The notes: generated by a model not told the origin, from the sequence alone. A stretch of 64,000 bases of DNA from Octopus bimaculoides (GCF_001194135.2 NC_069000.1:7269559-7333558), one strand, 5' to 3'. Shown: positions 2,018-57,600, counted from the stretch's first letter. Numbers and translations are program-made.

Positions 2018-5000
2018 CTAGCGAAGATTAGTCGTGTCGACAGAGGCCTTTAGGAATATAGTGTCATCTTTCATGAAGGGATAAGACTCAACTTCTGTTT
2101 GTGGAATAAAGTCAGGGCAACCAGTTGCTATGTTATAGTCACTTGATGGTTTATGAAAGCTTTTGCTGTTTGGATCAGGTAGGAATCTGTCACTATAATT
2201 TTTTTCTCCACCAAATTGATCGAGTACGGTAAGCGTAACTTTGTGCTTGAAAGGCCATGTAAGGATGTTGTCGTATTCTCCCTTCATTATTGTGAAATAA
2301 AAAGATAGATGTGTTCCTTTCCCTATTCCATCACCGTTTAGATAGACTTTGGCACACATTTTATAACCATACTTACTACTATAAAATGGCTCACTATATA
2401 TGAAAGAGGTCTTTGATGTTTTCAGTGCTGATTTCCATCGGGAATAGTTGCTAATTTTCATGAGAACTTCAGCATCATAATTTGGATGTGTCACTGAAGT
2501 CAACTTGGAATTCATTTCTTCAATTCTCATGTCATGGAGACCAATTTGTCGATCAATTGATGTTACTTGAGTCAGGAGTTGATCTAGAAAAACATTAAAA
2601 TGAATTTGTTGACATGGTTGCCTTTTGCACACACACACACACACACACTCCACCTCTCTCATACACCACAAACCCAATCATACCTGCTTCTGCCCCACTG
2701 AACCCAGTTGTCCCCCCACCCTCTTTGCTCGCTTCCGCACTGAACCCAGTTGTTGCCTGCGTCTGCCCCCAAACCCAGTCATCCCCGACCCTGTCCCCAA
2801 ACCTACTTGTTGCCCACCTCTACCCGAACCTAGTCATTCTGACTTCCGCCCCAACCCATTTGTTCACACTCGCACTCTGACACACAGAAATGAAATGCAG
2901 AAACTATTAATAAGTAGAAAATGCAAAAAGCCGGTCATTCCAAGAACTCACCAATAAGAGTACTAAGGTTTTGGATTGTGGTCATGTCAGTTATGGATTC
3001 TTTACTTTTTAGAATTTGTACTTGTTTGTCTGTTCCTTCTTTCAGTCGTTGTAAATCTTGATCCAATACTATTAACTTTTCTGTCAAATTCACAAATTTT
3101 TTCTTATTTTCAAAGTTTGTGTTAGAATATTTTTGAAACTCAGTTTCTATAGAAGAGAAACTGAATTCTACAGATTTTAAATCTTCTTCTGTCCGAGCCA
3201 CCACTTTGTCTAAGTTTTCCAAACGCTGACAAGTACGGGAATAATCCTGAAAATATGAAGAAACATTCAATAAGACAGTTTAAAGAGAAAACAAGATCAA
3301 ACTATCTTATCTCAACACTGGAACATTCAACAATCTCACTTAGGTGTTGGCAAAATGTCAACACACACAGCGATTCAAGAATTCTTTGGATCATTTCAAT
3401 AATACAGAAATATTTTCAGTTACAATTTTGTGCTGGTGGCATGTAAAAAGCATCATTTGAGCGTGGTCAATCCCAGTGCTGGCTGACTGGTCCTGTGCCA
3501 ATGACACATAAAAAGCACCATTCAGGCATGGTCGTTGCCAGTGCCGCCTGACTGGCTCCTGTGCCAGTGGTACGTAAAAAGTACCATTCAAGCATGGTCG
3601 ATGCCAGTCCTGCCTGACTGGTCCTTGTGCCGGTGGCATGTAAAAAGCACCAACTATACTCTTGTAGTGGTTGGCGTTAGGAAGGGCATCCAGCTGTGGA
3701 AACTTTGCCAGATCAGATAGGAGCCTGGTGCAGCCTTCTGGTTTGCCAGTCCTCAGTCAAACCATCCAACCCATGCCAGCATGGAAAGCAGATGTTAAAC
3801 GACAATGATGATGATGATGATGACTATCTTTGTTACTTTGTTTGTGCTTGTCCTTTGAGTGTATGCATATACAGTACATCTGCATTAACTATGGTATACA
3901 GAATAGTTATACACACACCCACACATAATGTATACATACACTGGCATTGAGAAGGGCATCCAGCCATAGAAAGCAAGCCAAATCAGACTGGAATCTGGTG
4001 CAGCTCTCCAGCTGACCAGCTCCAGTCAAACCATCCAACCCATACCAGCGTGGAAAACAGACGTTAAAGGATGGTGATGATGATAAGCCTCTATCTAGTT
4101 CCAATCAACCAAATTTACTTACGAGGCATTGGATAGATAAAGTTGCAGAAGGAGACACTTGCTGAAGGTATTAAGCATTAGGATTGAGCCAAAACCTTGT
4201 GACTGCGAAGTGAACACACACATGTATATATGTGTATGTGTGTGTGTGTGTCGTTTTATATACTTTATAAACACATGACAAAACATTTATTGCCCCCAAA
4301 AATAAACAAAATGAGAAAGGCAAATATGGTACGGAAACGAAAATGAAACTATTGAAGAAAAAAAGCAGGTGGAAGCGGATGTCTGATGATGATGATGATT
4401 CGGCAAATGATATAGAAACGAGTGTGAGAGTGTAAAACGAAGATAGATATACAGAATTATGAACTTTTATATCTTGGCTAAGATTCGTAATGGTGGTATC
4501 CATTTCGGTTATATGTCGGGCCATCATTTCAAGATGGATGTTACAGCTGGCATTTTGGTGATCCTTCATTTCCGTTTCATTGCCCTGAAAATAGAAAAAA
4601 GAACAAAAAAACAATAGAATCAACAATAACAACAGAATGGATTTTTGTTGTTATCTGTTGACCCTGTTGACATCTCTCTCCTGCAGGTGAATCACATCTC
4701 AGTCATTTAACACCAACAGCCATCCAATGGTTGAAGAAGACATCTAAGAGAAAGAGAACAGGGTATTGAAACAGATACTACTGACAAGAATATAGCAGCA
4801 TAAAAGTGGAGGTGTGTGGCTCAGTGGTTAGAGTATTCAGCTCACAAGTTCAATTCCCAGTGGCACTTCTATCCTAGAGTAAAACAATTTATTTCACGTT
4901 GCTCCAGTCCGCTCAGCAGACAAATATAAATAGTAACTGTAATTCAAAGGGCTGGCCTTGTTACATTTTGTGTCATGCTGAATCTCCCTGGGAACTACTT

Positions 5001-8000
5001 TACAGGTACACATGTCTGTGGAGTGCTCAGCCACTTGCAAGTTAATTTCACAAGCAGGATTTTCCACTGATCAAATCAACTAGAACACTTGTCATAATCA
5101 ACATAGTGCCAGTTAGTTTAGCAGCGCCATATAAACAATTCCAAAGACTCAGTTTTCACCAATGAAACAATGTTTTCTTATAAGAATGGAATGGAACAGA
5201 TTAGTGAAAACCGTTGAACAGATTAACATTTTTGATATCAACCTGCCTGGAACCACCCCTGGTTCTAGGATGCAAACTGCTTATTTTTAAATGAGCTGAA
5301 GGAAAACCTTCCATCAAAATTTCAAGTTAATCTAAGTTCTAAACACCAGTATAACAATGACAGAGTTATTTTGATTAAATGAAACAAAGGCAGTATAATA
5401 TTTCAAAATAAATATGAGAACAAAAGGGGTCAATGGGAATAAAGAATGGATTAATGCATTTAGATGTAGACAAATGTAAAACTGTTTCCTCTATAGGAGC
5501 AGACATTTGGTCTGCAGTGGACTACGAGGCATACCATGAAGATTTCACTGTAGAAAATAAAAAGTCTTTAGTCTGAATCCTAACTGACATTATTCAGTTT
5601 AGTGAGCCACTCAACTATTTGCAATTCAATCAAACTCAGCAATGCCAAGTCAATAGATCAGTTATTAATTCCACAGCTGACATCCCCAGTATCTTTTTAA
5701 ACCAGTGGATCTAAACCGGGGTCGATATGGCCCTTAGGGGTCCATATGAGACTTTGTTGTAAAAAGTTATGTGCAATAAATTGGTTATACTTCTGCAATA
5801 CACAAAAGAGTTTTTTAAATTTTTTAAAAATAGTTTCAGCTGAGAGCTGCGGCCATGCTGATATACCGCCGTTAGAGAGTACAGCAGGGTTCACCACCAC
5901 ACCCTGCCAGAGCCTCGTGGAGCTTTAGGTATTTTCGCTCAATAAACACTCACAATGCCCGGGCTGGGAATCGAAACCGCGATCTTACGACCGCAAGTCC
6001 GGAGCCCTAACCACTGGGCCAGTTTAATAATTATTTTTATAGAATCCCTAACAATATTTAATTATAAAAGTTCAACAGGATTTTTTAAACATCAAATGGC
6101 AATGATGGTCCACTCGAGTAAAATATGAATAAAAAAGGGGTCCATAGCCAAAAAAAGGTTGAGAACCACTGATTTAGACCAAGGTGGACTTTGCTGTTGA
6201 GTTCTCAGTGTGTTGGATCATAGACAAAGCAATGCTGTTGATATGAACTGGTGCTATTCACAAGTTGTAACCAAACATGAAGGTTTGATGGTTTTATCAA
6301 GAACCAGAAGAAACTAGAGATGGCCTGTGTCGGAAATTTCAAAAAGTGGAATAAATTTTGAAGAAAGATAAGAAGTCAGATATGTTAGAAGAGATGAGAG
6401 TGATGACAATAATTAAGATTTTAATGAAACAAAGATAAAAGCCACTTACTGTGAATTTACATCCAAAATTCTTAAATAAACAGTCTTTTGGTACTTCAGC
6501 ACATTCTTTCCAATGAGCAGACAACTGCAAGGTTAAAAATTATTATTATTATATCCATAAGTTATACAGAAATAAAAAAATAGAAGGGTGCCATATATAA
6601 TCTTAACAAAAAATGAAGCAGACTGACATGTAATTTTTGAACCTGTGGAAAGCATGCCAGATGCCGAAATATCATTCAACCAATTTCACATGATAACTAT
6701 GGCACTCTTCTGTTTATTATTATTATTATTATTATTATTAAAATTTTGGCACAAGGCCAGCAATTTCAGGGTAGGGGAATAAGTCAAATACGTCAACCCA
6801 GTACTCAACTAGTATTTATTTATTTCATCAACCCAGAAAGGATGAAAGGCAAAGTCAACCGTGGCAAACTTTAAACACAGAACATAGTGACAGACAAAAT
6901 ACCAGGCAAAATGCTTAGAGGTATTTCATGTCTTTGTGTTCTGAGTTCAAATTCAGCCAAGGTCAACTTTGCCTTTCATCCTTTCAGGGTCGATAAATTG
7001 AGTACCAGTTGCGTACTGGAGTCGATTTAAGCAGCTAGCCCCCTGCCAAATTTCAGGCCTTGTGCCTTTAGTAGAAAGGATTATTATAATTGTTATTGTT
7101 GTTTTTATCCCTACCTGAGATTGAACACACTCCTTTTGGCAATAATCACACGATACCATCTTATTTAGACATTCCTCAGCATGTGACTGCAACAGAAAGG
7201 TTAGAGTTGATTTCAAGGTTTTCATAAAGATGAAAAAAATTTATAGTCATGTAAATAAATTAAAAACAATCAATATATTAGTAGCAAAAAAATGGCCACA
7301 ATGTTCCCAGCATTGGTTGAAAGTGGTCAAGGGTTAAAAGTAGTGTTAGATCATGCGAGAGGTCAACTGGTGGTGTTAGACTGTAAGACAGATCAGCCAA
7401 TAGTGTTAGAATGTGAGACAGGTCAGGTGATGGAGTTAGAATGTGATATAGACCAGCTGGTGGTGTTAGGCAATGCGACAGGTCAACCAGAAGTATCAGA
7501 CCATGAGACAGGTCAACTAGTGGTGTTAGACCATGATACAGGTTAGCTAGTGGTGTTAGAATGTAAGACAGGTCAGCCGGTGATGTTAGACCATGAGATA
7601 GGTCAGCAAGTGGTGTTAGACTGTGAGACAGATCAGCAAGTGGTGCTAGACCGTGAGACAGGTCAGTTGGTTGTGTTAGACCATGCAACAGGTCAGACTG
7701 TGACAGGTCAGCTGGTGATGTCAGACCATGCGACAGGTCAGCCTGTAGTTTTAGAATGTGAGACAAGTCAGCTGGTTCCGTGAGAATGTGAGAAAAGCCT
7801 GCCAGTGAGACAAGTCTGCCAGAACAAGACAGGCCAGCTGGTGGTGTCAGACCGTGAGACAGGGCAGCCAGTGGTGTTGGATCATGTGACAGTTTATGTG
7901 GTATGTTAGACCATGTGACAGGTCAGCTTGGAGTGTTAAACTATGTATCACTATGAATTTTTGAAAATATCGAAACCTAATTGCTACTGAACTTCTTTTA

Positions 8001-11000
8001 GCATCCATAAAGAAACATTTTGATGCCTCATTTGTGAAATTTGGATGAATATTTTAGGAAGTATGATAATTTGAATGGTTAGCAAAATGGTTGAAATTTT
8101 GCTTAATTAATCTGTATAGTAGCCATATTGGTGATGTCATATCTTTGAAACTGAAGTGATTTTTCTTCAAATTACACAAATTAATAGTATCCATGGTAGA
8201 GCACTTACCTATGCTTTTTCAGGTTCTTAAAAATGAAACTTATTTTGTCATTTTTTTTTAATATTTAGGTAATCCACTCTGTGGAGTAGTTGGTGTTAGG
8301 AATGGCATCCAGCCATAAAATCCCTGCCAAAACAGACACAGTAACCTGGGATAGTCTTCTACCTGGTCATCTCCTGTCAGCCATCCTACTCATGCATGCA
8401 TGGAAGACCGGCACTATACGATGATGATGAAGTAAAGCCTATTTTCTTACATGTAACAAATAGTCAATTTTGTGGTGTCTTCAGACCCACCTAAATCCAA
8501 AAGTACAAACTACAGCGACTGGCACATTTGTAGTTGGTATAGAACTAAATAAATCCTGATATCTTGGAACACTTCAATAAAATTTTAACAAACTGTTAAA
8601 AATGGGTATAAATGGCAGGGTTTCAGATCAGGGCAGCCAGATAAGTTGGATTTCCTTCCTTTGACAGGGATTTTTTCACCACAGCCTTGTAGAGCTCTGT
8701 AGAAGAGATGACTTGCACAGTTTGACCACACAAAAAAGCCCATTTTTTTTGCTTCATCATTTTCATGTCAAAATACATTTCTTAAAATCCTACACTTACC
8801 TATGATGTCAGGGTCCCTCAAACACCCTGGTATTTCCACCCATTCACAAAGTTTGCCTGGATTTTTTTTTTTTTTTTTACTGTTGAACAGTAGCCCTCGA
8901 TTTAGTTCAATGCACTGGAGCACATAACTGAAGTTGTGTTGAAAATAGTCATGAAGAGGACTGATTCTGCTTTATTTGATATAAAAATTGATGGAGGTAG
9001 GTAAGGTAATCATTACGAAATATAAAATTTAAAATTTTATCATTAATTTTCAATTACAAAAAAACATTTTCTTCAAAGTTTTTTTATACCATTAGAAAGA
9101 AAAATTTCTCATGAATTCAATATGGTCATTGCCAAATATGGCCATGATTCAGTTCATATATCTGCCATTCATAAATGGTAATATTGAACACCTTTGTTAG
9201 TTGCCATTCCCTTACTCTACACCTGCATAATCAATACAAAAAAATGATTAATACAATTAATCTCAGTAAATTTGAAGAATTGGAAATGTGCCTTTCTACT
9301 GTAAAAGATCTGCATAGAAAAAGAGAAAAACAATGTTAGAGAGCAGAAATCATAGATCTATATATTATAATCATTTACAAGCAATCAGCCATTACCGAGT
9401 TACTAATATCTATTTTCATCCAACACATTTGAAATCTGCAAAGAACAAAAATAAATTAGATGCTAAATCCACATGCATCAAAACAACGTAGACGATCATC
9501 AACAGCAAAATCTTTAACTTATATTTTTTGCACCTGCCCTAAAAGCTATACAAATAAAAGCTATAAATTAGTCAAAAGAATCAAAGCCTTTCTTGTTCTC
9601 TCTTTCCTTCTTTATACCTGTAAATAAGAATTTGATTGAAATAAAGAAATAAAAGCACAACAATGGCTGAATGACACTCAACAATTTATGTGTGATAATG
9701 GCATGATCTAAAATCCTGGATTCATCAATCAAATGTCACAGTTATTCATCATAAAGACGAAATCAATGTGATCAACCTTGTACAGGTGTATCAATAAAGT
9801 CTGTTTTGAGTGGATTTCAAAAAATAGTGACCTGTTAACTTGGAGGAAAAGATTTAATTAAATGCTGTCAAAAGACTTGGTAAAGTATATACTATATCTT
9901 TTGTAGACTTGTTGTAGATAATCCCTTTCAGGAACCACCCAGGTATGGCCATTTGGATAAATCGCATCAAAACCACATGCGAAAATGAATTCCTTGTTAC
10001 CTGTGTCAACATCTTCCACAAAGAACTAGTGTTAAGCATTCTCATGCCCATAGCTCATAAACTAAATAACTATTCCTTCAGAAGCAATTACTTCAATGAC
10101 ACTATACCAATAAACCAATCTGATTCATTAACTACAGCAACCCATTCCACCTCGTTATTGAAATTAAATGATGGCTCGTTGGTTATTGAGTCTGATGATA
10201 ATACGTTTGCTCTGCTTGATTTTTCTTTCATCCTTTTTTTACTGCTAGGTTCAGCATACGGATCTCTTTTTACTAGATAACTGACTGGGCATGACAGGTC
10301 TCTCTAGTATATGTTGTAATATACCAAGCACAGCTTTCGAGTCTTGAACTAACTCATCCAAGTTTTTTCTCTTTTTTTTTACCATACACTAAGCACTTAC
10401 TAAGGACACCAAGAACGGCTTCCAAATATATCTCATCTCATTTCTTACCCCTGCCAGTGAAAACACTGATAGATTTATTATAGACATAAGAACATTGACG
10501 TCAGTTGAAGTGACACATGAGCCACCATGTTCTCTTACAGCATCCACCAATGGTTTTGTTTCTTCTTGTTTGGAAGCTTCTTCCATTTCTCTCTTCATTT
10601 TCATTCTTTGAGTCTATCCTCTACTCTATACACCACCACCCTCTGTCCAAATGTGTCCAACAGTTCCAACAAGATGCCCCAAGTGATGCGCCAATCATAT
10701 GGGATGTATGTGCCATTGAAGGATCATCTAGTGATGTTAGCCACTGGACACTGATCCTGCAGGAAAAGTGAAAAAAAAAATATCATAGAACATGCTAAAT
10801 TATAACAATAGTATATCACAATAACATGTAAGAACAGGTTCTATTATTTGAACTCGTAAGAAGCACTACATGTCCATTTTTACGTTCCTTCGCTTGATAA
10901 TTTATTTCATTTTCAGCAAAAAATAGAAACATAAATGTACATGACAAAACATTAAGTCACATACATACTGAGAATAAATACATTCATTGGGCCTCACAGA

Positions 11001-14000
11001 GGCAATATGGCCAATGCAGGTATCACATTACTAGCACCCAGGCTGGTGGCAGGTAAAACCACCTTTTGAGCACTGGGCCTCATGGAGGCGATGACAAATG
11101 ACCGAGACTTTTGGCAATATGCTGTGCTTGAGAAGACCCCCATCAAGCCAAGTGAAATTGTAGTCATGGTAGATATTGGTGTCATGCACATGGCACCCAT
11201 GCTGGTGGCACGTAAAAGCACCCACTTCACTCTTGGAGTGTTGGCATTAGGAAGGGCATCCAGCCGTAGAAACCATGCCAAATCAGACTGCAGTCTGGTG
11301 CAGCCCTTCAGCCCTGGTCAAACTGTCCAACCAATGTCAACATGGACAACAGACATTAAATGATGATGATGGTTGGCCAAATCAACGTAATAGAAAATGA
11401 AAAGAGAGGAATTAAGATAAGGCCTGGTAAGCCTTGTGTGTGGAAGTTCCTCAAAACAAAAAATATTATTTTGATTTATTGGTCAGTGTAAGTATTCAAT
11501 TTTATACGAGATGGGAGCATGAAAAAAAATCATGACACATTCTATCACACAAACAATCACATGCATAAAGCATGAAGTATGGCAACAGTAATTTAAAGTT
11601 AAATATCATCTACATTAAAGAAAAGAAAATAAGTGCAAAAATATAATCAATTAAAAAGAGACAGCAAAATCTTACCTATGAAATCAAGATGACTTCTTCA
11701 AAGAAAAGTGTGAAGGCAGCATGTCTTGATTGAAGATACAACCTTCAGAGTTGTTTCAATGAGAAAATAGCACTTTGATCCCAGGTAATTGGGAAAAATC
11801 ACCTGGGATCATCCCGAGTGGTAAAATTGTAGGAGAATCTTGTTAGTAGGAGGAAGATTGGATAGAGATTTCTTCCTGCCATGCCCTGTACTAAGGAACA
11901 CACTCCTCAAGAGCTTAAAAAGTTCAGCAGCTATTGTATTAAGAACAATGAGAATAAGATACTAGAATAATCCCTTTAAGGTAAATTTTAGTTGTACTAA
12001 AAATATATGTATATACTAACTGTGTATCCCAACATTGCTGGGTAATTTTCACTAACTTTAGCGGACTTTTCATCATCATCATCATCATCATCGTTTAACG
12101 TCCGATTTCCATGCTAGCATGGGTTGGACGATTTGACTGAGGACTGGTGAAACCGGATGGCAACACCAGGCTCCAATCTAATTTGGCAGAGTTTCTACAG
12201 CTGGATGCCCTTCCTAACGCCAACCACTCAGAGAGTGTAGTGGGTGCTTTTACGTGTCACCCGCACGAAAACGGCTACGCTCGAAATGGTGTCTTTTATG
12301 TGCCAGCCGCACAAGAGCCAGTCCAGGGGCACTGGCAACGATCTCGCTCGAGAACCCTACAAGGCCAGTCANNNNNNNNNNNNNNNNNNNNNNNNNNNNN
12401 NNNNNNNNNNNNNNNNNNNNNNNNNNNNNNNNNNNNNNNNNNNNNNNNNNNNNNNNNNNNNNNNNNNNNNNNNNNNNNNNNNNNNNNNNNNNNNNNNNNN
12501 NNNNNNNNNNNNNNNNNNNNNNNNNNNNNNNNNNNNNNNNNNNNNNNNNNNNNNNNNNNNNNNNNNNNNNNNNNNNNNNNNNNNNNNNNNNNNNNNNNNN
12601 NNNNNNNNNNNNNNNNNNNNNNNNNNNNNNNNNNNNNNNNNNNNNNNNNNNNNNNNNNNNNNNNNNNNNNNNNNNNNNNNNNNNNNNNNNNNNNNNNNNN
12701 NNNNNNNNNNNNNNNNNNNNNNNNNNNNNNNNNNNNNNNNNNNNNNNNNNNNNNNNNNNNNNNNNNNNNNNNNNNNNNNNNNNNNNNNNNNNNNNNNNNN
12801 NNNNNNNNNNNNNNNNNNNNNNNNNNNNNNNNNNNNNNNNNNNNNNNNNNNNNNNNNNNNNNNNNNNNNNNNNNNNNNNNNNNNNNNNNNNNNNNNNNNN
12901 NNNNNNNNNNNNNNNNNNNNNNNNNNNNNNNNNNNNNNNNNNNNNNNNNNNNNNNNNNNNNNNNNNNNNNNNNNNNNNNNNNNNNNNNNNNNNNNNNNNN
13001 NNNNNNNNNNNNNNNNNNNNNNNNNNNNNNNNNNNNNNNNNNNNNNNNNNNNNNNNNNNNNNNNNNNNNNNNNNNNNNNNNNNATCTTTTTCACCACAGC
13101 TTTGCAGATGATGGGAGAAAGCTTTTTACAAAAAACAATTTTTGAAAATTTATGAATTCCCCCTCCCCTGCCTTCCAAACCAATTTAGCCCAAATTCTTT
13201 TATGTACTACATACTTAAAATGATGGGATAATCCTTTCCAGTTCAAAAACGAATGTTTAGAAAATTTATCAATTGTATCCACTACCCAACTTACCCAATA
13301 CCAGTATTGGCCAATGTTTTTTTTTTTTTGCCCTACACACTTAAAAACAATGGGAGAAGCCTTGAAGATTAAAAAAGAAGATTTTGATAAAATGTAATTT
13401 CAAAAGAAAGAGAGGGAGATCTCTGTTGCTGTCACAAATTTTAAAATGTTTAAATTAAGTGAAAATTTTCAAATTTAGTTTATTGATGTACTTTTTCATG
13501 CTAAATCCAAGTTTGCGATTCAATTATTCCAGAAAAGTTTTAGAAAAATTCTACGGAAACTTAAAGTTAGATCATTAGGTAACAAAAGGAAAGTTATGAG
13601 TGAGAATTAATACATATACAAAGAGAGGGAGTGACAAAGTGTATGATGAATATATAGAGAGATAGATTGATGGTGATAGACAGAAAGTGGGAGAATAGTC
13701 AATCTAAAAGTTGAGTTATTTCTTGTAGCAAATTATATATATATTTTATTATTATTTATGAATGACATTGTCTGTAGGACACAGATTTCGAAAATGAAAT
13801 TCGTTTTCCTCAAAGATGCACCATTCCAGAGCCTTTTTGGGTTAAACATTCATACATAACCATATATATTAACATTTCTATAATAGATATATAATAATGA
13901 GCCAACAGTAAGCCAGTGACTAGGCTTGGAAGTTAACCAAAATGTTACCAACAGTCTTGTTACAAAGAGTAGTCTTTATCAATAAGATTATTCAATTCTA

Positions 14001-17000
14001 TTCAACTACTAGACTACCCATGACCTGTTGGGTTACTGGGGCAGTCTGAGTTTCCTAGCAACAGAGTTTTGTTGTGTGGGGTTTTTCTTCTTTTCCATGT
14101 TATTTTGCATGCTTTCAACGAATGTGACATCGAAATCACGCGTAAAGGAAAGATTTGGCTGCTATTTTATGCATGCCCTGCTACCATGTAATAGGTATTT
14201 CGGGTCCTTTATCGCAAAAATACATATGCAAAAATACCTGCTAGGTAAAATTCAGAGGTCATCCAGCACACATTAAACAGCAAGAGTGAATAAACAACAT
14301 TCTCAATACGATGATTACATACTAATTTTAGACTCTAGAAGACTTATTTATCTCAATTTAGTGCATTTTTTGATAAAAAATATGTTTACTTACCAATGAA
14401 TCTGTCCATTTTTTTAAAACTCTGGGTCAAAATTAATATTTGATCCATATTCCATTTGACCTCTCGCCACGTGGGAATCTGTCAGTTTGACAAATACTGT
14501 CAAAGTGTGTTAATCATATACAAAAAGTATATGATCAAAACTTTTTTTGACTTTGTGCTTTTTCACCATATTGTGGCTAAATTCAGCAATGACCATATTG
14601 AATTCATGAGAAATTTTTCTTTCTTATGGTACAAAAAACCTTGAAGAAAATATGTTCGTTTCTAAGTGAAAATTAATGATAAAATTATAACTTTTATATT
14701 TCATAACAATTATCTGACATACCCCATCAGTTTCTAATATCAAAATAAAAACAAAAACATTCATTTTTCTGATTGTATGATTTTCAACACAACTTGAGTT
14801 ATAGTGCTCCAGTACACTGAAAAAAAAAAAAAAAAAAAAGACAAACTTTGTAAATGCATAGAAATACCAGAATGTTTGAAGAACCCTGACATGTTATGTA
14901 ACCGTCAGATTTTAATTAAAATTATATGAGAAGTTCACATCCAGAACTTTCAAACAAGTATTTTGATATAAAAATGATGAAACAAGTGTGTTTTTGCTTA
15001 TTCTAACTGTGCTTGTCTCCACTGTACAGCGCTCTATAGTGATACTTAGTGAAACCCATGTGACAGGTCAGCTGGTAGTGTTAGACCATGTGACAGGTCA
15101 GCTGGTAGTGTTAGACCATGTGACAGGTCAGCTGGTAGTGTTAGACAATGCGACAGGTCAGCTGGTAGTGTTAGACAATGCGACAGGTCAGCTGGTAGTG
15201 TTAGACTAAGTGACAGGTCAGCTGGGTAGTTTTAGACCAAGCGACAGGTCAGCCGGTAGTGTTAGACCAAGTGACAGGTCAGCAGGTAGTGTTAGATAGT
15301 AAGTAAAGTAAAAGAAAAGTGAGTCACTTGGATATTACTGCCCTGAATGCTAAGACTCATAGGGCTGCTAACTTGGTTTCCACAGCTACTAAGTGACCAA
15401 GTTCACAATATTGCCTATGAACCGGATACCAGCCTGTTACAGGGTTAGCTCATTTGCAGCTGAGCTGACTGAAGCAATGTGAAATGAAGTGTTCTGCTAA
15501 GAAACTTGATGCATCACTCAGTCCTGGAATTCAAACAACAACCTTGCCATCATGGCTTAACTACTAGGCCATGCACCTTTACTGCTCATATAACAATAAT
15601 TAATTTCAAAAAACAAAAAGGAAAACAGAAAAAAAAGGAAGAAAGTAAATGGTGATAACTGACTGTTTTGTCACTTCTCCGTATTGATGAGTCACAATCT
15701 TCACACTTAATTATTTGAAACGGGCACGTCTCAATATGTTGCTCTTTCTCTTGTAAACAACCTGTCCATGTACAACCTGTGTTGCTACATTTTTTCTGCC
15801 AGTATTCGCAATTATTCAGGTGTTTGGAATGATCCTAAAAAAAAAAAATTTAACAAAAAAAAAAAACACAAAATTAGAAAATATTTTCACACACACACAC
15901 ACACTTCAAGAACACAATTTCATTACTCTTATATGTCTTCACTACAACACATCAAAAGACGTGTCTTCCGCATTGCAACATGCCAACAGGTGTGTTTTCC
16001 TCACTGTAACATGCCAACAGGTGTGTCTTCCTCGCTGTAACATGCCAACAGGTGTATCCTCTTCACTGTAACATGCCAATAAGTGTGTCTTCCTCCCAGT
16101 AACATGTCAACAGGCATATCAGAGATAATATGGTCAATATCTACATTACAATGTAGATATTACAACACTCAGTAAGACAGGGCTTCTTGCAGTGAATTCT
16201 CTTAACAAGGTTAGTGAGGACTATACCTTATTCTGGAAGGGCTATCCTGAGGACAGGACATCACCAATATGATATGAGATTTTTTTGTGAGAAAGTCTGC
16301 TGTCTGAGTTGAGTGAGACACCAGCTGGCATTAAAGAGCGGCTAATATTATTTCATGCTCCATTTGAGAAGTCCCAAGTCACATGATTGAGAACTTGTGC
16401 ATCTCCTGTGCAATGTAATCATCTGGATAAAGACTACTTCTATCAGACATTAGATTAAGTACTAACTAAAATACCAAATTAATACAAAACATCCCACTGT
16501 GTGATTTTTAATGCAGGAACAGGGAAGAAAAGAAAAAAAAAAACAAGGAATAATTGGTACTTATTCCATCAACCCTGAAAGATGAAAATTAACCTTTCAC
16601 CTTTTCGAGGTTGATGAAATAATAATGATGGTCACTTCTGTTGATTTCGACATACAAGTGTTTGAAGGGGAGGATTAAAAGAAAGAAGAAAAATTAGTAG
16701 CAGCAGTAACAACAACAACAACCAGAGAGAACAAAGAACACAAGTAAAGAAAGTGGTACTTACCGATAAATCTTTGTACAACATTTTTACAGGACAGCCA
16801 TAACATTTATTATAACAATATACAAGTTGGTGGTTGATGTATCTTCTTGCACTGAAGTCTTCATGGAGCTGAGAATGGACAAATTATTTAGATTAGTTTA
16901 TTTCAATGTTTCCCAATCTTTTCCAGTTGCCATCCCTTTTGGCTTCTGGGATGACACACAAGCACACACCTCTTTCTATAGCAAATTCAAAACATCTGTA

Positions 17001-19015: not shown

Positions 19016-19744
19016 AATTATATTACTATTAATGAGTATAATTTTAATTTCTCAGGTCTGCTGCAAATAATTCACCTTTATCTATTACTAGCAATGCAAC
19101 CCAGCGTTGCCAGGGTGTTATGGCCTACAGCTGTATTGTATTATTTGCTCCTTTTTGTGGGCAGAATTGGCACAGCTGATATATAGTGAACTGGATTACT
19201 GACATAATGGAAGTTATTGTTTGTTTAAAAGTGAAAGGAGGGAGGATACAATTTGCGTGAATTTGCATGAAAGTGCTTTCTGTTTCTTAAGAAGGATCAC
19301 AAACTGTATTGTTTCATTGTATAGAAGTGGGTTATTATGATTTTGCCCAGAAATCATGTTTTCCAAATTTTAATTTATCCCCAATTTCCACTGCAATTTC
19401 TTAATTTGTAACTCTTTTTTGAATTTTTTTTTATCCACATAGAAAAATACAGAGATTATGAATCTGGGAAATATATTTTTTTAAAGTTTAATTTTTTTTA
19501 AAGACACACTCAATGCCCCTTCCCCCACCTCACCCATCATCTCCCCACTTTCAAAAGGCCAAAACCTCCCAATGTTTCATGCATGCACAGAATTCTACTA
19601 AAATAGCAGACATAAAAAATACCAGACCACCAGAAAACCCGACATGCTAGAAACAACAGGTAAACAACAATATTCCTCACTTTCCAAAAAGCTAAAAGTG
19701 AAATATTGGGAGTTTGTAGGTTTGATGTGCTATTATTATCTAGA

Positions 19745-20431
19745 AAACACAACCTTAGCTTCAGGGAAACAGGGCAAAGAGTGAATGATGTGGAAAGAAG
19801 GAAGCTAGAAATAATTCTCAGCTACAATGCGACGAAACAGGGAATAGGTATCTCTGTTCAAATGGCAAGCTACTTCACACGTCTTAGAAAAAGCATCAGA
19901 TGGTATCACAAGATTGCTTTTGAATACCTGCTCAAAACAACCATAGTAAATGCTTTGGTGATATTTCGAAAGAACAATCAACAGAAAGTGCAGATTACTG
20001 AATTTAGAAAATCTATTATTGAATCACTCTGTGATTTGGACACTCACCAACAATACCAAGAGCTGCAAGCACTAGTACATAACTTGAAAAGGTGCAGCGA
20101 AAGGGACAAATCGAACAGAAGTAGTTGATAATTTCTGTTACCTATGTAAGCTAAATTTGGTGGCGCATGGCTTAGTGGTAACAGATAATCTGGAAACATT
20201 TTATTGCGAGTGTCAGCTCTAGACACAAGTTCTCTGTAACCCAAAAGCAATAAAGAATTCTTAACAGCCTCCTTCATAGCTAATTTTGGTCAACTAGGTA
20301 ACAGAAGCTACCAAACACTTTGTAGGAGCCAGAAAAAAACTTATCTCATGTGTGGTGCTGATATTGTCGCTCTTTGCATCTTCAACGCAAAGAGCAACTT
20401 GCACTTCCTCGTCAACTTTCACCTACAATAA
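19745..20431 (+). mobile_element. piggyBac transposase relic (C-terminal catalytic part plus cysteine-rich tail), interrupted by a ~190-bp insertion
   Basis: KLEIILSYNATKQGIGISVQMASYFTRLRKSIRWYHKIAFEYLL...VNALVIF...ITEFRKSIIESL corresponds to piggyBac KPxIIxxYNxTKGGVDxxDQM...RKSxKWYxK, but the GVD Asp residues are lost. 20315-20431 reads KKTYLMCGADIVALCIF...NFH, which is CRD-like. Confidence 0.78.
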
Positions 20432-41258: not shown

Positions 41259-44200
41259 CATCATCATCATCATCATTATCATCATCATCATTATTATCAT
41301 CATCAAAGTGGTGAGCTGGCAGAATCGTTAGCACACCAGACAAAATGCTTGGTGGTATTTCTTCCGTCATTACATTCTGAGTTCACATTCCGCTGAAGTC
41401 GACTTTGCCTTTTACCCTTTCATGGTTGATGAAATAAGTACCAGCTGAACACTGGAGGGAGTGGGGTTTGGTTTCAATATAATTGACTAGTTCCCTCCCG
41501 CCAAACCATCAGGCCTCATACCTGTTGTAGAAAGGATTGTTATTATTATATATATAAGAAATCATTATTATTATTATTATTTTATAAGAAGCAGAACATA
41601 TGCTTCTTTCATCTCTTGTTTGTTTCCTCACTCTACTTCTGACTTCTTCCTGCATCATCTCTTTCTTCTTAAAGATATTTGAAATGTTGTTACTTACAAT
41701 GTCAAACCAATAAGGATCATTGTTTATCCCATCTTCTTGGTTCTAGTCAACACTGACTCAGTGTGATATTGTTTAATACCCCATATATGGTCATACAAAA
41801 TCTCTCTCTACACACACATATATATATATATGTATTAGAGCGTGGCCGTTGCCAGTACCGCCTGACTGGCTCCCGTAGGATTTTCGAGTGAGATCGTTGC
41901 CAGTGCCCCTGGACTGGCTTGTGCGGGTGGCACATAAAAGACACCATTTCGAGCGTGGCCGTTTTCGTGTGGGTGACACGTAAAAGCACCCACTACACTC
42001 TCTGAGTGGTTGGCGTTAGGAAGGGCATCCAGCTGTAGAAACTCTGCCAAATTAGATTTGAGCCTGGTGTTGCCATCCGGTTTCACCAGTCCTCAGTCAA
42101 ATCGTCCAACCCATGCTAGCATGGAAAGCGGACGTTAAACGATGATGATGATGATGATGATGATATANNNNNNNNNNNNNNNNNNNNNNNNNNNNNNNNN
42201 NNNNNNNNNNNNNNNNNNNNNNNNNNNNNNNNNNNNNNNNNNNNNNNNNNNNNNNNNNNNNNNNNNNNNNNNNNNNNNNNNNNNNNNNNNNNNNNNNNNN
42301 NNNNNNNNNNNNNNNNNNNNNNNNNNNNNNNNNNNNNNNNNNNNNNNNNNNNNNNNNNNNNNNNNNNNNNNNNNNNNNNNNNNNNNNNNNNNNNNNNNNN
42401 NNNNNNNNNNNNNNNNNNNNNNNNNNNNNNNNNNNNNNNNNNNNNNNNNNNNNNNNNNNNNNNNNNNNNNNNNNNNNNNNNNNNNNNNNNNNNNNNNNNN
42501 NNNNNNNNNNNNNNNNNNNNNNNNNNNNNNNNNNNNNNNNNNNNNNNNNNNNNNNNNNNNNNNNNNNNNNNNNNNNNNNNNNNNNNNNNNNNNNNNNNNN
42601 NNNNNNNNNNNNNNNNNNNNNNNNNNNNNNNNNNNNNTGTTATTAGATGCCTCTACTGTAACCATAGATTTTAAACCAGTCTTAGCCTAATAAGCCACCT
42701 TGGAGCCCACAATGAGTAAGCTGTCAATCTGGTCAACTTCAGAGACATAAAGGACAAACGTTATGTATGTGTATGTAATGTATGTAATGTACGTATGAAT
42801 TGTATGTATGTAGTGTATATATGTAATGTATGTGTGTAATGTATGTGTGTAATGTATGTGTGTAATGTATGTGTGTAATGTATGTGTGTAATGTATGTGT
42901 GTAATGTATGTGTGTAATTTTATGTGTGTAATGTATGTGTGTAATGTATGTATGTAATGTATGTATGTAATGTATGAATGTGATGTATGTATGTAGTGTA
43001 TGTATGTAATGTATGTATCTATGTAATGTATGTATGCATGAATGAATGGTCAACATTATATAAATTTGCAGTTCAATTTGTAGAGTATAAATAATGAATA
43101 TTTTATAAATATAAACAAATTTAAACATGGAACAAGGAATAAATTACGTTTCACTGTTCATGGTATTCGAACTTACATACTAACTTTTCAAAGGTCAGCA
43201 TTTTAAATCAGGTATTTTTATAACTCCAGCATCACAGTATATACAATATCATCTAAGAGAGAGATGGTGGGAAAGTGTGTTGGGGGGGGGGGAAGAATTT
43301 ATCACTTCATTGTAATTATCAATCTTTCACTCTCTCTTTTCTTGAATGCTTCATTTGTGCAGCTCTGGGGAGTGAGGTGGATCTCCTACCCCAGATTTGT
43401 TTTCCTTGTATGTTGCATTGGGATGATTTTCAATCTCTTTGCAAATTTTGAGGAACACACATTACGAAATGGTGACATTGTTTCATGACAAACAAACATC
43501 AACTTTTATGTGTGTGTGTGTGTAAATGCACGTGTGTACACACACGTATATGTGTATATATAAACACACATGCACATTTATATATATGTGTGTGGATATA
43601 TAAAACAAAATTCTGCGCCTCTTTCAGCTGGTTACCTGAACACTGCCCACAGCTCAGCTCTCCCTCTGCAGCAACAATTAGAACATGCCAATCAGAAATC
43701 TGGATTTAGTGATGAGAAATTCAAAATGCAGACTGTTCAACAGGTAAGTGATATAGCACTCAGAACATTCATAACTATTTCTAATTTATGCATATAACTA
43801 CTTGTAGCACAGTACATTAATGTTTCTCATGAACGTGAAAATCAAATGGAAATTGTAGTTGTGATACCTGTGCCGGTGGCACATAAAAAGCCCCATCCAA
43901 ACGTGGCCAATGCCAGCGCTGCCTTGACTGGCTAGTAATCTTTCTCCTCCTCTATTATAAAAGAATGTGACTCTTCACCATTCATAGACTGCTGAATATT
44001 CTGATCTTTTAGAGATTCATTATGATTTAGAAGTTGAACAAGAGTAATTTCACTTCCAGTGGTTGACAGAAAATCTTTCACACTTTGAAGTGAACATAAA
44101 TTACTTCAGAAGACAACAGTTTTGCTAACTCATTAATTTGTTAATATATGTATGTCTTATGTATTATAATTGCTGTTTATTGTGAGTGTGGTGTGTGTGT

Positions 44201-54360: not shown

Positions 54361-54625
54361 GCACATGCACGTGTACCTCTGTATTATTTACTCATTCGTC
54401 GTGTCATAGCAAATATGAACCCGTTAACCGTTAAAGGTTCCAGTTACTAACAATCTTAGATATATTCAGAATCTGCACGTGGTCTTCATTGCCGACTAAA
54501 TTACGAAATAAGGTTTATAAATTTTCAACAGATTCATCAGAAGAACAACAACAAATGCTTTAAGTGGCTGCATCTTTAACGAAGATATTTCTGTTTAATT
54601 TCAAAGGTAGCAAGTTGGCCTTAAA
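53664..54625. promoter_or_regulatory. Probable bidirectional promoter region shared by MRPL17 and ATP23
   Basis: The two start codons are head-to-head, 962 bp apart. CACGTG E-boxes near 54368-54373 and 54476-54481. Confidence 0.6.
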
Positions 54626-57600
54626 ATGACCGAAGCGACAACAAATACTAATAATGATGGAGAAGCGACCCCGTTTGATACATCGAGGTATAAATCAAAT
54701 GAACATGCAGAGGATTTTGGATATAATTTCTACCCAGACAGAGCGAGTGCCAAACGGAAAACTTTCTGGGAAAAAATGTGGACTGAAGGTCGTGGAAAGA
54801 AATTTAAGTGTGAGGCTAATGTGACATGGTGTGTGGAAAATCGTGAGTGTTCATTATTTTCTACTCTTCTGATATTTCTGGTGTTTCTTAAATAATGTTT
54901 TGTGAAATGAAATTAACTAAACGAAGAAGGATTGCGATGCCGGGTTGACCTTGTTCATTGACTAGACACAATGTTTTAAGATCAAGCAGCACATACAATT
55001 TGTCATTGTCAGTCAAAGACCTTAGGGACTTTAATAATGGGATTTTAAACTTTTAATGTTCAAGTCTCGTTATACCAAGTGCTTTTACCTTTTGTTCTGC
55101 GACATGTCTTAAAAGGTCTGTAATGTCGTTGTTTATATTTTGATAAATGCCTGTATTAAAAGAAAACAAAGAATGGAAAATGAGAAGTGAAAGCTTTTTG
55201 AGAAATAAAGGTCCAATGATATTGGGTGACAAAATTCATCAGAGCGCTGTTCCATGAACTGGATAAAAGTAATTCTTTTCACATCTACCTCTAATGCCCT
55301 TGGGAAAGGGCACTCAATCTAATTTCCTGTCCCTAAAGTTTTTTGTTTGGCTACCAATGCAGGAACTTAGTATTGATAAAATGACGATCAGTATACAAAC
55401 GTTACTCTTTTATTGATTTCATTCATTCATTGGTTTAGTTGGCCATGCTATAACGGCGAAGAAAATTAACAAAATGTACTACGGGCGCAGGCGTGGCTGT
55501 GTAGTAAGAGGCTTGCTTCCCAACTACATGGTTCCGGGTTCAGTTCCACTGAGTGCCATTCTGGGCAAGTGTCTTCTACTGTAGCTTCGGACCGTCCAAA
55601 CTGACAAACAAACGAGGAGGGTATAAGGTGTGAGACGTGCTAAAAATAACGGTTAAATAGCCCTTAGATCACGCACCAAAACCGTTTTTTGTTTTGTTTT
55701 TGCATAATCGTATGAATTCCCGTGTGTAGAATACAATTTCGCAAACAATATTAAAAGTTGTGAGGGGTTACATGGCGTGCTTAATGAAGAATTCCGCCCA
55801 TGTGTGTGTGTGTGTGTGTGTATTGACCGTTGACTGAACACTATTCAATTTTTTTCTCCGTGTTTTTCTCCTTGTCTCCGTATTCTTTCTGTTGAAGAGC
55901 GTAGCTCGAAACGTCAAAGACTTTCCGTATTCCCGAGCGTCATACTAATATATACTTTTGTTATTTACACCACCTGTCCTCGTCTGTTGTTATTATTTGT
56001 ATATTCTCCCNNNNNNNNNNNNNNNNNNNNNNNNNNNNNNNNNNNNNNNNNNNNNNNNNNNNNNNNNNNNNNNNNNNNNNNNNNNNNNNNNNNNNNNNNN
56101 NNNNNNNNNNNNNNNNNNNNNNNNNNNNNNNNNNNNNNNNNNNNNNNNNNNNNNNNNNNNNNNNNNNNNNNNNNNNNNNNNNNNNNNNNNNNNNNNNNNN
56201 NNNNNNNNNNNNNNNNNNNNNNNNNNNNNNNNNNNNNNNNNNNNNNNNGCTTGACATTTTTATAGAGAACCCATTTCTCATCACCAGTCACTATTCGGTT
56301 CAAAAGAGGTTCATTTGTGAGATGTGACAGCAAGGAAGAGCACACATTCACTCTCTGCATGCAATTAGACTCGGAATTTGCTGACTTTTTCACTGGCGTG
56401 CAGGTGTCAATGAATGGTTGAATGAACAAATCCAAGCTTCTCTGCTAGTTCCTCAACAGTTATGATGGGATTTTGTTCCACCAGGTTTTGCAGGTCGTCC
56501 TCATCGAGATCTACACATCATCCAGGACAAGGATCATCTTCTAGACTCTAGTTTCCAGCCTGGAATATCTGGAACTACCGTTGACACTGGTTCATGCTTT
56601 TTGTCCAATTCCCATATACTGCATTAATATTCCTCACACTTTCCATTGTGTTGTTGCCTTTATTGAACTCATAAAGCAAAATAGGCCAAATATGCTCTTT
56701 TGTCACTTCCATTATAGCTTTGAAAAAATAACTGTTACAATCGAACTGTACTCTTCAAAAATTTCAGTAAGAATAAGGACAAGGTAAAATGACTACCTGC
56801 TTTTATAGCAAGTTGATGCAGGTAGTTTATCCTGTCCCCCTCTGACTTTTTGTTCATGCAATTGCAAAAACCACATTTTTTATGAGATGACCCAATATTT
56901 TGAGTAGGCCGTTTCTCTGTTGTACATTCTCTACATTCATCAATCTCTCATAATAACAACTCCATGGCTCTTTTCAGCAATACCATAATTCTCTCAACTA
57001 CACTCCCTTACAATCTAGAACACCTCACCCCTCTGATCCTTACATCACAGAATGTGTACAGAAGTTACTTTCTGCTTCTTCCTTTGTTTAGTACACCTCA
57101 CATCTAGCTTCTCTTTTAGCTGCTTGATATTACTCTCTGCTGCTCCCTTTCTAGTCTTTCCAAACCTGTCCCTTAACTTTTATTACACTATGTACCGTAT
57201 TATTTTACCATTATTTTATTTTCCATCAAGCTGAAAAGCAATTATGTATATAAATTCATTTGTTTTCTCTTTCTTGTTCTCTTTTAAATGTAGATCCTAT
57301 GGTGAAATTACTTTTAAGAGCTTTGAAACGTCATGGTTGGTAAGATGAACATTATTACAGGCAATTTCATTTAATTAATATTACATAATTTATGATTACA
57401 AAGATCAAGGTCAAATGTCTGCTGTCATCCCTGGACTTTAGTAAACAATACATTTTCATTAACCTCAAGGTCAAATGTCTGCTGTCATCCCTGGACTTTA
57501 GTAAACAATACATTTTCATTAACCTCAAGGTCAAATGTCTGCTGTCATCCCTGGACTTTAGTAAACAATACATTTTCNNNNNNNNNNNNNNNNNNNNNNN

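Follow-up and report, generated by a model that had tools for sequence, protein, structure and literature searches.

What kind of sequence is the 7.1-kb insert that splits an intron of a TRAF3-like gene in Octopus bimaculoides, and what is left of the spliced gene that it carries? The insert lies in a stretch of 64,000 nucleotides (GCF_001194135.2 NC_069000.1:7269559-7333558), called here the window and numbered from its first letter. An initial annotation of this DNA had read positions 7939-15051 as a transposon with long terminal inverted repeats (TIRs) and CACTA-like ends, and had suggested an uncatalogued cephalopod family. Our analysis indicates that the segment 7942-15048 is very probably an old, non-autonomous copy of a class II cut-and-paste transposon of the DDE type, hAT-like in character, which inserted into a minisatellite of the TRAF3-like intron with a 7-bp target-site duplication (TSD) and was subsequently deleted and rearranged.

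The insert occupies an intronic minisatellite

The insert covers 7,107 bp, including an assembly gap estimated at 712 bp, with its gene remnant on the minus strand, and it interrupts a 30-bp minisatellite. The minus strand also encodes the host TRAF gene, with a RING exon at ~17.5-17.7 kb, TRAF zinc-finger exons at ~16.7, 15.7 and 7.1 kb and the MATH exon at 2.0-2.7 kb, which places the insert within an intron, as had been proposed for a class II transposon with TIRs. The left half of the minisatellite extends from 7339 to 7941 (period 30 according to Tandem Repeats Finder for 7339-7892, with the repeat family D2 reaching 7941) and the right half from 15056 to 15296 (8 copies, 93% matches). 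Both arrays share the same unit, with the consensus CCATGTGACAGGTCAGCTGGTAGTGTTAGA. Because the same 30-bp minisatellite abuts both ends, the element must have arrived in a single insertion.

The terminal 15-mers ACTATGTATCACTAT (7940-7954, plus strand) and ACTAAGTATCACTAT (15036-15050, minus strand) have no further match in the window. The coordinates given in the initial annotation are off by one at each end. The TIRs of the insert measure 13 bp, of which 12 are complementary: TATGTATCACTAT at 7942-7954 (plus strand) forms the 3′ end of the element, and it pairs with 15036-15048 (minus strand) at the 5′ end, the reverse complement of which is TAAGTATCACTAT. Immediately outside are GTTAAAC (7935-7941) and GTGAAAC (15049-15055), both read on the plus strand and matching at six of seven positions; they are the two copies of the TSD, which the initial annotation had been unable to resolve. 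Their length was taken from the perfect TSDs of four relatives described below. No second copy of the element was found within the 64-kb window. Orthologous loci were sought with the MATH-domain exon of the host gene; the best match was 51% identical (Ciona) and none was close to the host.

The copy retains parts of a three-exon gene

The gene remnant was found through a three-frame concatenate of 9857-10790 (1,052 amino acids), which matched two metagenomic proteins, P0121 (1,108 amino acids, E = 1.4e-47) and P0122 (1,043 amino acids). P0121 is carried by an 18.6-kb contig, L001. Read on the minus strand, the window element is collinear from end to end with positions 7866-14779 of this contig (nucleotide E-values down to 1e-133), and its left TIR is homologous to L001 14767-14779. 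Four departures from L001 were observed: a 2.4-kb deletion in the coding region, the insertion of short interspersed elements (SINEs; 8275-8480, 10985-11371 and from 12070 to the gap), a 1.2-kb stretch of intron 1 without a match, and the left inverted arm. Could the protein-like segments and splice signals be noise in an AT-rich intron? A Pfam scan of the segments picked out earlier and of the three minus-strand frames over 9100-15051 gave nothing, and a first, word-indexed protein search with a 148-residue C-terminal composite was empty as well, both of which would fit noise; for the plus strand, tblastn and tblastx were used. Nevertheless, the match to P0121 and the collinearity of the whole element at the nucleotide level make this explanation negligible.

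To map the remnant, P0121 and the upstream exon of L001 were aligned with the window by tblastn; all parts lie on the minus strand. Coding exon 1 is left at 14395-14460, read against the L001 exon 1 ending ..ETGFRQIDEQI(S)/GTAAGTAAAC with a conserved donor G/GTAAGTAAAC (the slash marks the exon boundary). The middle coding exon (...HLDFIG) lies at 11676-11942, matches the L001 exon (tblastn 11910-11674, 47% identity, E = 4e-17) and is followed by the donor G/GTAAGA after 11676. The large exon starts at 10756, after the acceptor AG at 10758-10757, and runs for ~40 codons to 10643, where its 3′ side is the deletion junction (~10644-10662); tblastn aligned 10786-10643 with the first 48 residues of this exon at 48% identity. 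The C-terminal part, including the Tudor/Agenet-like domain, occupies 9861-10610 and corresponds to residues ~866-1108 of P0121 (tblastn 10610-9861, 42% identity, E = 6e-38). The position of the stop codon is conserved, and the alignment contains several stops and frameshifts.

What is absent is L001 10026-12462, that is, residues ~49-852 of P0121 (~804 codons), including all the catalytic residues, and the two ends of the window element are homologous to the ends of L001, as in a deletion derivative. No DDE triad can be seen in this copy, in agreement with the initial annotation. Its proposal of an unassigned spliced gene on the minus strand was correct as to strand and splicing, and no Pfam model recognizes the gene; the gene is not intact. 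Judged from the sequence, the transposase gene of the window copy is dead, its catalytic part being deleted and the remainder full of stops and frameshifts. The deletion junction at 10644-10662 is in frame (..DTFGQ/RVVVY..). This may be due to chance, with a probability of one in three; alternatively, the gene may once have produced a shortened protein that joined the N-terminal exons to the Tudor-like domain.

The splice sites were compared with those of the relatives. In L001, the exon ...EEVDLDFLG ends with G/GTAAGT and the next exon, after ...ttacag, begins in phase with GCCCAAGATGTCAAGCAGCTAAC; a second contig, L002, has the same arrangement. The donor after 11676 and the acceptor before 10756, both predicted earlier, fall at the same codons and in the same phase as in L001 (acceptor 9929/9930) and L002. 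The donor of L002 is GC rather than GT (ATCG/GCAAGT). The exon-1 donor is also conserved (14394 in the window, 8581 in L001), which supports the GTAAGT donor that had been assigned to an exon encoding MDRFI. The ATG at 14409 proposed as its start aligns with an Ile codon of L001 and is not the original initiation codon. The 59-nt intron ending at the acceptor 14334 found no support either: if the L001 donor is joined to the acceptor 61 nt downstream, a stop codon is reached, whereas joining it to the acceptor of the middle exon (9346/9347; ~11942 in the window) keeps the phase. The gene therefore has three coding exons, the short intron is rejected, and the window donor more likely pairs with ~11942. 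Among the protein-like segments listed in the initial annotation, only one block of 15 and 17 letters is a genuine coding remnant, while CLMCAG...KHAK and a segment of 13 letters, both located in 13084-14300, match nothing.

Full-length relatives define the ends and a 7-bp target-site duplication

The full-length relatives, all from marine metagenome assemblies, measure 6.2-12.8 kb, have TIRs of 11-16 bp starting with TAGGTA and contain one spliced gene with three coding exons. Three of them (L012, L013 and L014) are 99.8% identical over 6.25 kb, occupy different loci of one assembly and diverge completely outside the element, which speaks for mobility. Their common sequence begins with TAGGTAGTCCC and finishes with GGGACTACCTA. 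Seven element ends together with these three copies place the termini at TAGGTA.../...TACCTA, corresponding to TATGTA and TAAGTA in the window copy; the base just outside the end varies among the relatives. With the ends fixed at TAGG/CCTA, the "ACTA" and "CACTA" noted earlier at the window termini consist of two TSD bases followed by TA, so that the outer AC/GT belongs to the duplication and the CACTA-like reading falls.

The flanks are identical at all seven positions for L012 (CTATAAT on both sides), L014 (CAATAAC), L010 (CTATAAG) and L011 (CTAACAG), and at six of seven for the window (GTTAAAC and GTGAAAC). In these five positive cases the outermost base agrees on both sides, which argues for a TSD of 7 bp rather than 6 bp. 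Of these five sites, four conform to nTnnnAn as a target pattern. The targets were the minisatellite in the window and AT-rich non-genic sequence. A 3-bp TSD with AGTAGG termini had been considered from L010 and L011; it is ruled out by the ends TAGG/CCTA of L012-L014, which give 7 bp. TSDs of 8 bp, TTAA or TA, checked by eye, did not fit.

Several observations concern the organisms that carry the family. The identical 1,043-residue protein P0122 is encoded on four contigs (including L002 and L003) from different marine metagenome samples, one of them from Tara Oceans (ERR599294), and its carrier is probably a common planktonic animal. At 1403-2566 of L012, ~5 kb upstream of the element copy, there is an open reading frame for a reverse transcriptase (RVT_1), and a nearby 400-bp repeat is common to L013. 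These two contigs are repeat-rich eukaryotic DNA within metagenome assemblies. A scan of metagenome contigs from the Joint Genome Institute returned only short loci (at most 4.9 kb), none with both ends, and no contig carrying the Nucella protein P0132 was located.

The long inverted repeat as a probable inverted duplication of 5′ subterminal sequence

Inverted repeats of ~470 bp with a 39/39 exact match had been reported, and both were confirmed. In the BLASTN alignment, 8782-9144 and 14915-14574 are 75% identical across 374 columns (E = 2e-69). The arms reach further, to 8685-9148 and 14570-15039, when aligned by nhmmer or globally, with ~83% identity over 417 ungapped positions in the global alignment. 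The innermost 69 bp are 90% complementary and contain the exact run (9094-9132 and 14586-14624), which was verified by eye. The right arm (14570-15035, minus strand) is the native 5′ subterminal region, since it matches L001 7958-8702 and includes a conserved block just upstream of exon 1. The left arm (8685-9148, plus strand) is an inverted duplicate of this same region without the terminal ~11 bp: its positions 9144-8689 match L001 8394-7877 in inverted order, and it occupies the place of ~430 bp of 3′ sequence in L001 (13790-14220).

A long inverted repeat is absent from all five coding relatives examined (L001, L010, L011, L012 and L014). The "long TIR" is therefore a 5′ subterminal inverted duplication confined to this copy or its sublineage, and not the family trait for which it had been taken. 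The block 14574-14642 (also present at 9076-9144), the most similar part of the arms, is conserved with L001 8326-8394. This non-coding block lies ~90 bp upstream of exon 1 in L001 and holds a AAGATGGCG-type motif; it may be a promoter or a region bound by the transposase.

We also considered a nested or composite origin of the element, in which the left arm would be a 5′ fragment derived from another, related copy and brought in, with its orientation inverted, by insertion or recombination. The arms differ by ~17-25%, more than the mismatches in the TSD (1/7) and the TIRs (1/13) would suggest for a single young duplication, and the left arm lacks the terminal ~11 bp. However, neither a TSD nor a second terminus was seen beside the left arm, which replaces ~430 bp of the L001-type 3′ sequence instead of being added to it, and the innermost 69 bp have remained 90% identical, with 39 exact bases. 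Such an origin is thus unlikely, and duplication of the element's own 5′ region is preferred. Two independent insertions of a miniature inverted-repeat element in opposite orientation, named at the outset as a possible source of the arms, do not account for them, both arms belonging to the same element family and being embedded collinearly.

A direct repeat of 22 nt, TTTTTCACCACAGCYTTGYAGA, is present only at 8672-8693, on the outer edge of the left arm, and at 13087-13108, 3 nt past the assembly gap. No such repeat is expected by chance; it may be the sign of another duplicated segment that falls within the gap.

The transposase family and its predicted structure

A HMMER search against 1.84 billion representative sequences returned 2,272 proteins at E ≤ 0.001, with 322 cluster representatives at E ≤ 1e-30; the coiled coil may account for the weaker matches. 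The members with a named source are from Nucella, Lineus, Elysia, Plakobranchus and Ptychodera, that is, from gastropods, a nemertean and a hemichordate, and the family is consequently not restricted to cephalopods. The members are titled "hypothetical" or "uncharacterized", and one UniRef entry is titled "Tudor domain-containing". In an alignment of 38 sequences, D404, D478, C510, H513, R606, N608, F611, N636 and E787 are invariant, with a D-D spacing of 74 and a D-E spacing of 309.

The AlphaFold model has a mean predicted local distance difference test score (pLDDT) of 81.7, with values above 90 over residues 330-950. It shows a sheet of three strands (b1-b3) with D404 on b1, the helix a1, the strand b4 (472-477) directly followed by D478, and b5 followed by C510 and H513. 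A large all-alpha insert separates the second D from E787, which is carried by the helix following the insert. A long coiled coil of ~180 residues (132-311) precedes this core, and a C-terminal beta barrel (1014-1082) was linked by a profile search to the Agenet domain 6ie4 (E = 6e-5). The complete transposase of ~1,230 residues has a basic N-terminal exon and, at its C terminus, the Tudor/Agenet-like barrel, with the coiled coil and a DDE domain of the RNase-H fold between them. When the model was compared with the PDB by Foldseek, the top ten matches were all Hermes (E = 5e-6 to 1e-4, probability 1.00, template modelling (TM) scores of 0.40-0.48 on the Hermes length), with 11-14% identity in the structural alignment. 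ISCth4 followed (E = 2e-3), RAG1 was far weaker, and no P-element transposase was found among the 50 best matches.

Relation to hAT and other superfamilies

The hAT transposases (Hermes, Ac, hobo, Tol2; structures 4D1Q, 6DWW and 8SJD) share with the family a DDE domain of the RNase-H fold, in which a large all-alpha insertion separates the second D from the E. A CxxH motif that follows the second D (C510-x2-H513 here), short TIRs and a single gene are also common to both. The hAT consensus motifs DxWTS, tDNAsN, CxAHxLnL and SERxFS have their counterparts in a similar order in D-G-T-S, S-D-R-A-S-V-N, C-N-A-H-F-L and S-E-x-x-F-G. Hermes has spacings of 68 and 324, close to the 74 and 309 of the family, and the target nTnnnAn resembles the hAT pattern nTnnnnAn. 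A hAT-like group is indicated by the fold, the motif order and the D-D-E spacing, and likewise by the short TIRs and a target of the T...A type. We favour, with moderate confidence, an assignment to hAT in the broad sense.

The family nevertheless differs from hAT by several features. No BED zinc finger and no PF05699 domain were detected in the 38 members, and a coiled coil and the Tudor/Agenet-like barrel are present in addition. The termini TAGGT of L001, L010, L011 and L012 fit the hAT consensus YARNG at four of five positions (TATGT and TAAGT in the window). The TSD is 7 bp and not 8 bp, although hAT families with 7-bp TSDs are listed in Repbase (PMC4455052).

Several results weigh against the reading proposed here. 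The hAT-like label rests on fold, motif order and spacing, and it is backed neither by a Pfam transposase model nor by a sequence-level match to a transposase in the PDB. In the 38 members, Pfam gave nothing beyond coiled-coil noise, with no match to the hAT dimerisation domain (PF05699, E ≤ 0.1), to BED or to any other transposase model; the upstream exons have no Cys/His pattern, and no zinc-finger family appeared among the Pfam matches. The sequence-level PDB searches yielded only coiled-coil noise and the Agenet domain. The TM scores are modest and the root-mean-square deviations high (10-19 Å). Moreover, L001 and L013 have intact ends yet no matching TSD: the flanks of L001 (7859-7865 and 14780-14786) read CTACTAG and CTGTCAT, which agree at three of seven positions, and those of L013 (~7590 and ~13836) read AGCACAA and CAAGAAC, which agree at one. 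Recombination between copies, aberrant one-ended events or misassembly are possible causes. Finally, when the empty site of the window was rebuilt by removing the element and one TSD copy, the satellite unit at the junction measured 31 nt instead of 30 nt, its register being kept within 1 nt.

Might the family instead belong with P, Dada, Kolobok or a Mutator-like group, or form a separate new superfamily, on the grounds of a TSD of 7-8 bp or a related fold? The lack of a recognizable hAT Pfam domain or BED finger would be in agreement with this. To our knowledge, CMC, Kolobok, Academ, Dada, Zisupton and Novosib are without a structure in the PDB, and for this reason Foldseek was unable to rank them. 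The ten best structural matches were nonetheless all Hermes, the spacings are near those of Hermes, and 7-bp TSDs also occur in the hAT families of Repbase cited above. A 7-bp TSD is reported to be typical of P-superfamily elements such as Galileo, and Galileo/1360 to have very long TIRs (PMC2775673, PMC4168063). The TSD length is thus shared with P, as are the long arms of the window copy, though these are no trait of the family here. P elements are marked by a THAP DNA-binding domain and a P-type catalytic domain that contains a GTP-binding insertion. However, Pfam matched neither THAP nor Tnp_P_element, and P-element transposases were missing from the 50 best structural matches. Dada elements share the 6-7-bp TSDs, a multi-exon transposase of more than 1,000 residues, aquatic animal hosts and internally deleted derivatives (PMC3706591). 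In contrast to the present family, with its TIRs, CxxH motif and minisatellite or AT-rich non-genic targets, Dada has no TIRs, inserts only into small nuclear RNA and tRNA genes and carries a DxxH motif and CCCC/CCHC fingers (PMC3706591). We consider membership of a superfamily other than hAT in the broad sense rather unlikely.

The initial annotation had compared the element with the CMC (CACTA/Mirage/Chapaev) and Sola types. In its strongest form, such a reading would make it an autonomous, cephalopod-specific element with long TIRs and an intact spliced reading frame. The right end does read CACTAAG when the flanking base is included, the gene contains introns, the arms of ~460 bp exist, and the large intron-containing transposase with a long D-to-E spacing is shared with CMC. 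However, the relatives end with TAGGTA and not CAC(TA), and the TSD is 7 bp as compared to 2-4 bp in CMC and 4 bp in Sola, for which long TIRs are a trait while the five coding relatives have none. The reading frame has lost ~804 codons and is interrupted by stops throughout, and gastropods, a nemertean and a hemichordate have homologues too. The Pfam CACTA and KDZ models gave no match among the members, Pfam being without animal Chapaev models. The fold is closest to Hermes/hAT, and the CMC or Sola interpretation is very improbable.

The hAT-like family itself might represent an undescribed deep-branching lineage, possibly of superfamily rank. The proposal is tentative. The lineage would be characterized by the 7-bp TSD (nTnnnAn), the TAGGTA ends, a three-exon transposase of ~1,230 residues with a Hermes-like core, a coiled coil and a Tudor/Agenet-like domain that is possibly chromatin-reading, and no BED or recognizable hAT dimerisation domain. 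Such a lineage would have a wide distribution among molluscs, nemerteans and hemichordates, with recent activity in at least one source organism. We found no description matching the family in the literature. If the lineage is indeed separate, it provides a data point on the variation in TSD length (7 versus 8 bp) and in accessory domains around a Hermes-type core.

A probable course of insertion and decay

By analogy with Hermes, the transposase would cut both ends of the element with hairpin chemistry, make a staggered cut of 7 bp in a target of the type nTnnnAn and join the element into it. Insertion into the 30-bp minisatellite duplicated 7 bp of the target. An in-frame deletion of 2.4 kb removed residues ~49-852, and the 3′ part of the element gained a second, inverted copy of the ~460 bp of 5′ subterminal sequence. 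Both events are rearrangements that would be expected from aberrant gap repair after excision. The internal rearrangements of Ds (derived from Ac), of KP and of other deleted P elements are attributed to interrupted gap repair. In Ds- and KP-type derivatives the termini are likewise kept and the central coding part lost; unlike these, the deletion of the window copy is accompanied by the inverted duplication. Afterwards the copy took up three or more SINEs and accumulated numerous point mutations. On the evidence of what remains, the window copy cannot make a transposase and could at most have once been mobilised in trans.

Non-coding parts, nested SINEs and the assembly gap

The 3′ part of the element also follows L001. 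The 3′ subterminal region (7955-8275, minus strand) is 70% identical to L001 14431-14779 (E = 2e-45). It is followed by a nested SINE fragment with a (GAT)n tail (8275-8480, plus strand), which interrupts the homology to L001 and matches SINE copies at 3659-3828, at 41994-42153 and elsewhere in the window. The homology resumes at 8480-8612 (minus strand), which matches L001 14220-14368. The match to L001 identifies the 735-bp interval that separates the left TIR from the left arm (7955-8684) as the element's own 3′ region plus the SINE, and the possibility of a foreign nested insertion at this place was rejected. Downstream of the stop codon, a segment resembling a 3′ untranslated region (9298-9458, minus strand) matches L001 13641-13790.

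The second intron measures 919 nt in the window as compared to 284 nt in L001 and contains nested SINE material at 10985-11371 (plus strand), detected by BLASTN to other SINE copies. A further nested SINE (12070-12371, minus strand), 96% identical to 41863-42163, ends at the assembly gap (12372-13083), which is crossed by no reading frame. Beyond the gap, neither BLASTN nor tblastx aligned the intron-1-equivalent stretch 13084-14275 with any of the related elements, and Pfam gave no match. The two flanks of the gap keep their order and orientation on L001 (window 14275 to 8702, window 11948 to 9329). The gap therefore lies within the counterpart of intron 1, and the scaffold join is plausible.

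A second gap in the window, at 42168, is adjoined by the SINE 41863-42167, just as the gap at 12372 is adjoined by the SINE 12070-12371, the two copies being 96% identical. One of them enters its gap by the subrepeated head and the other by the (GAT)n tail. The scaffold gaps seem to be caused by this SINE family, as is typical of assembly breaks at repeats.

Annotation of the locus and neighbouring features

The window copy is an ordinary decayed non-autonomous DNA transposon of a poorly annotated family. Its 7.1 kb should be masked as such, with no open reading frame called as a gene, and it should count as intron in the model of the TRAF3-like gene. At the level of the family, several hundred public protein clusters ("hypothetical", "uncharacterized" and one "Tudor domain-containing") correspond to one DDE transposase family for which Pfam has no model, and a profile of this family would clean the gene sets of molluscs and other marine invertebrates. 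The 99.8%-identical copies constitute a candidate active element.

Two other features were observed in the window. Upstream of the TRAF gene, at 19664-20125 (plus strand), an open frame of 154 codons matches the C-terminal end of DDE_Tnp_1_7 (piggyBac-type; E = 5e-5) and is a transposon remnant. Further on, at 59484-59720 (plus strand), perhaps together with 54611-54892, an exon with the motif HEFIH matches Peptidase_M76 (ATP23-like; E = 2e-17) and belongs to a neighbouring host gene on the plus strand.

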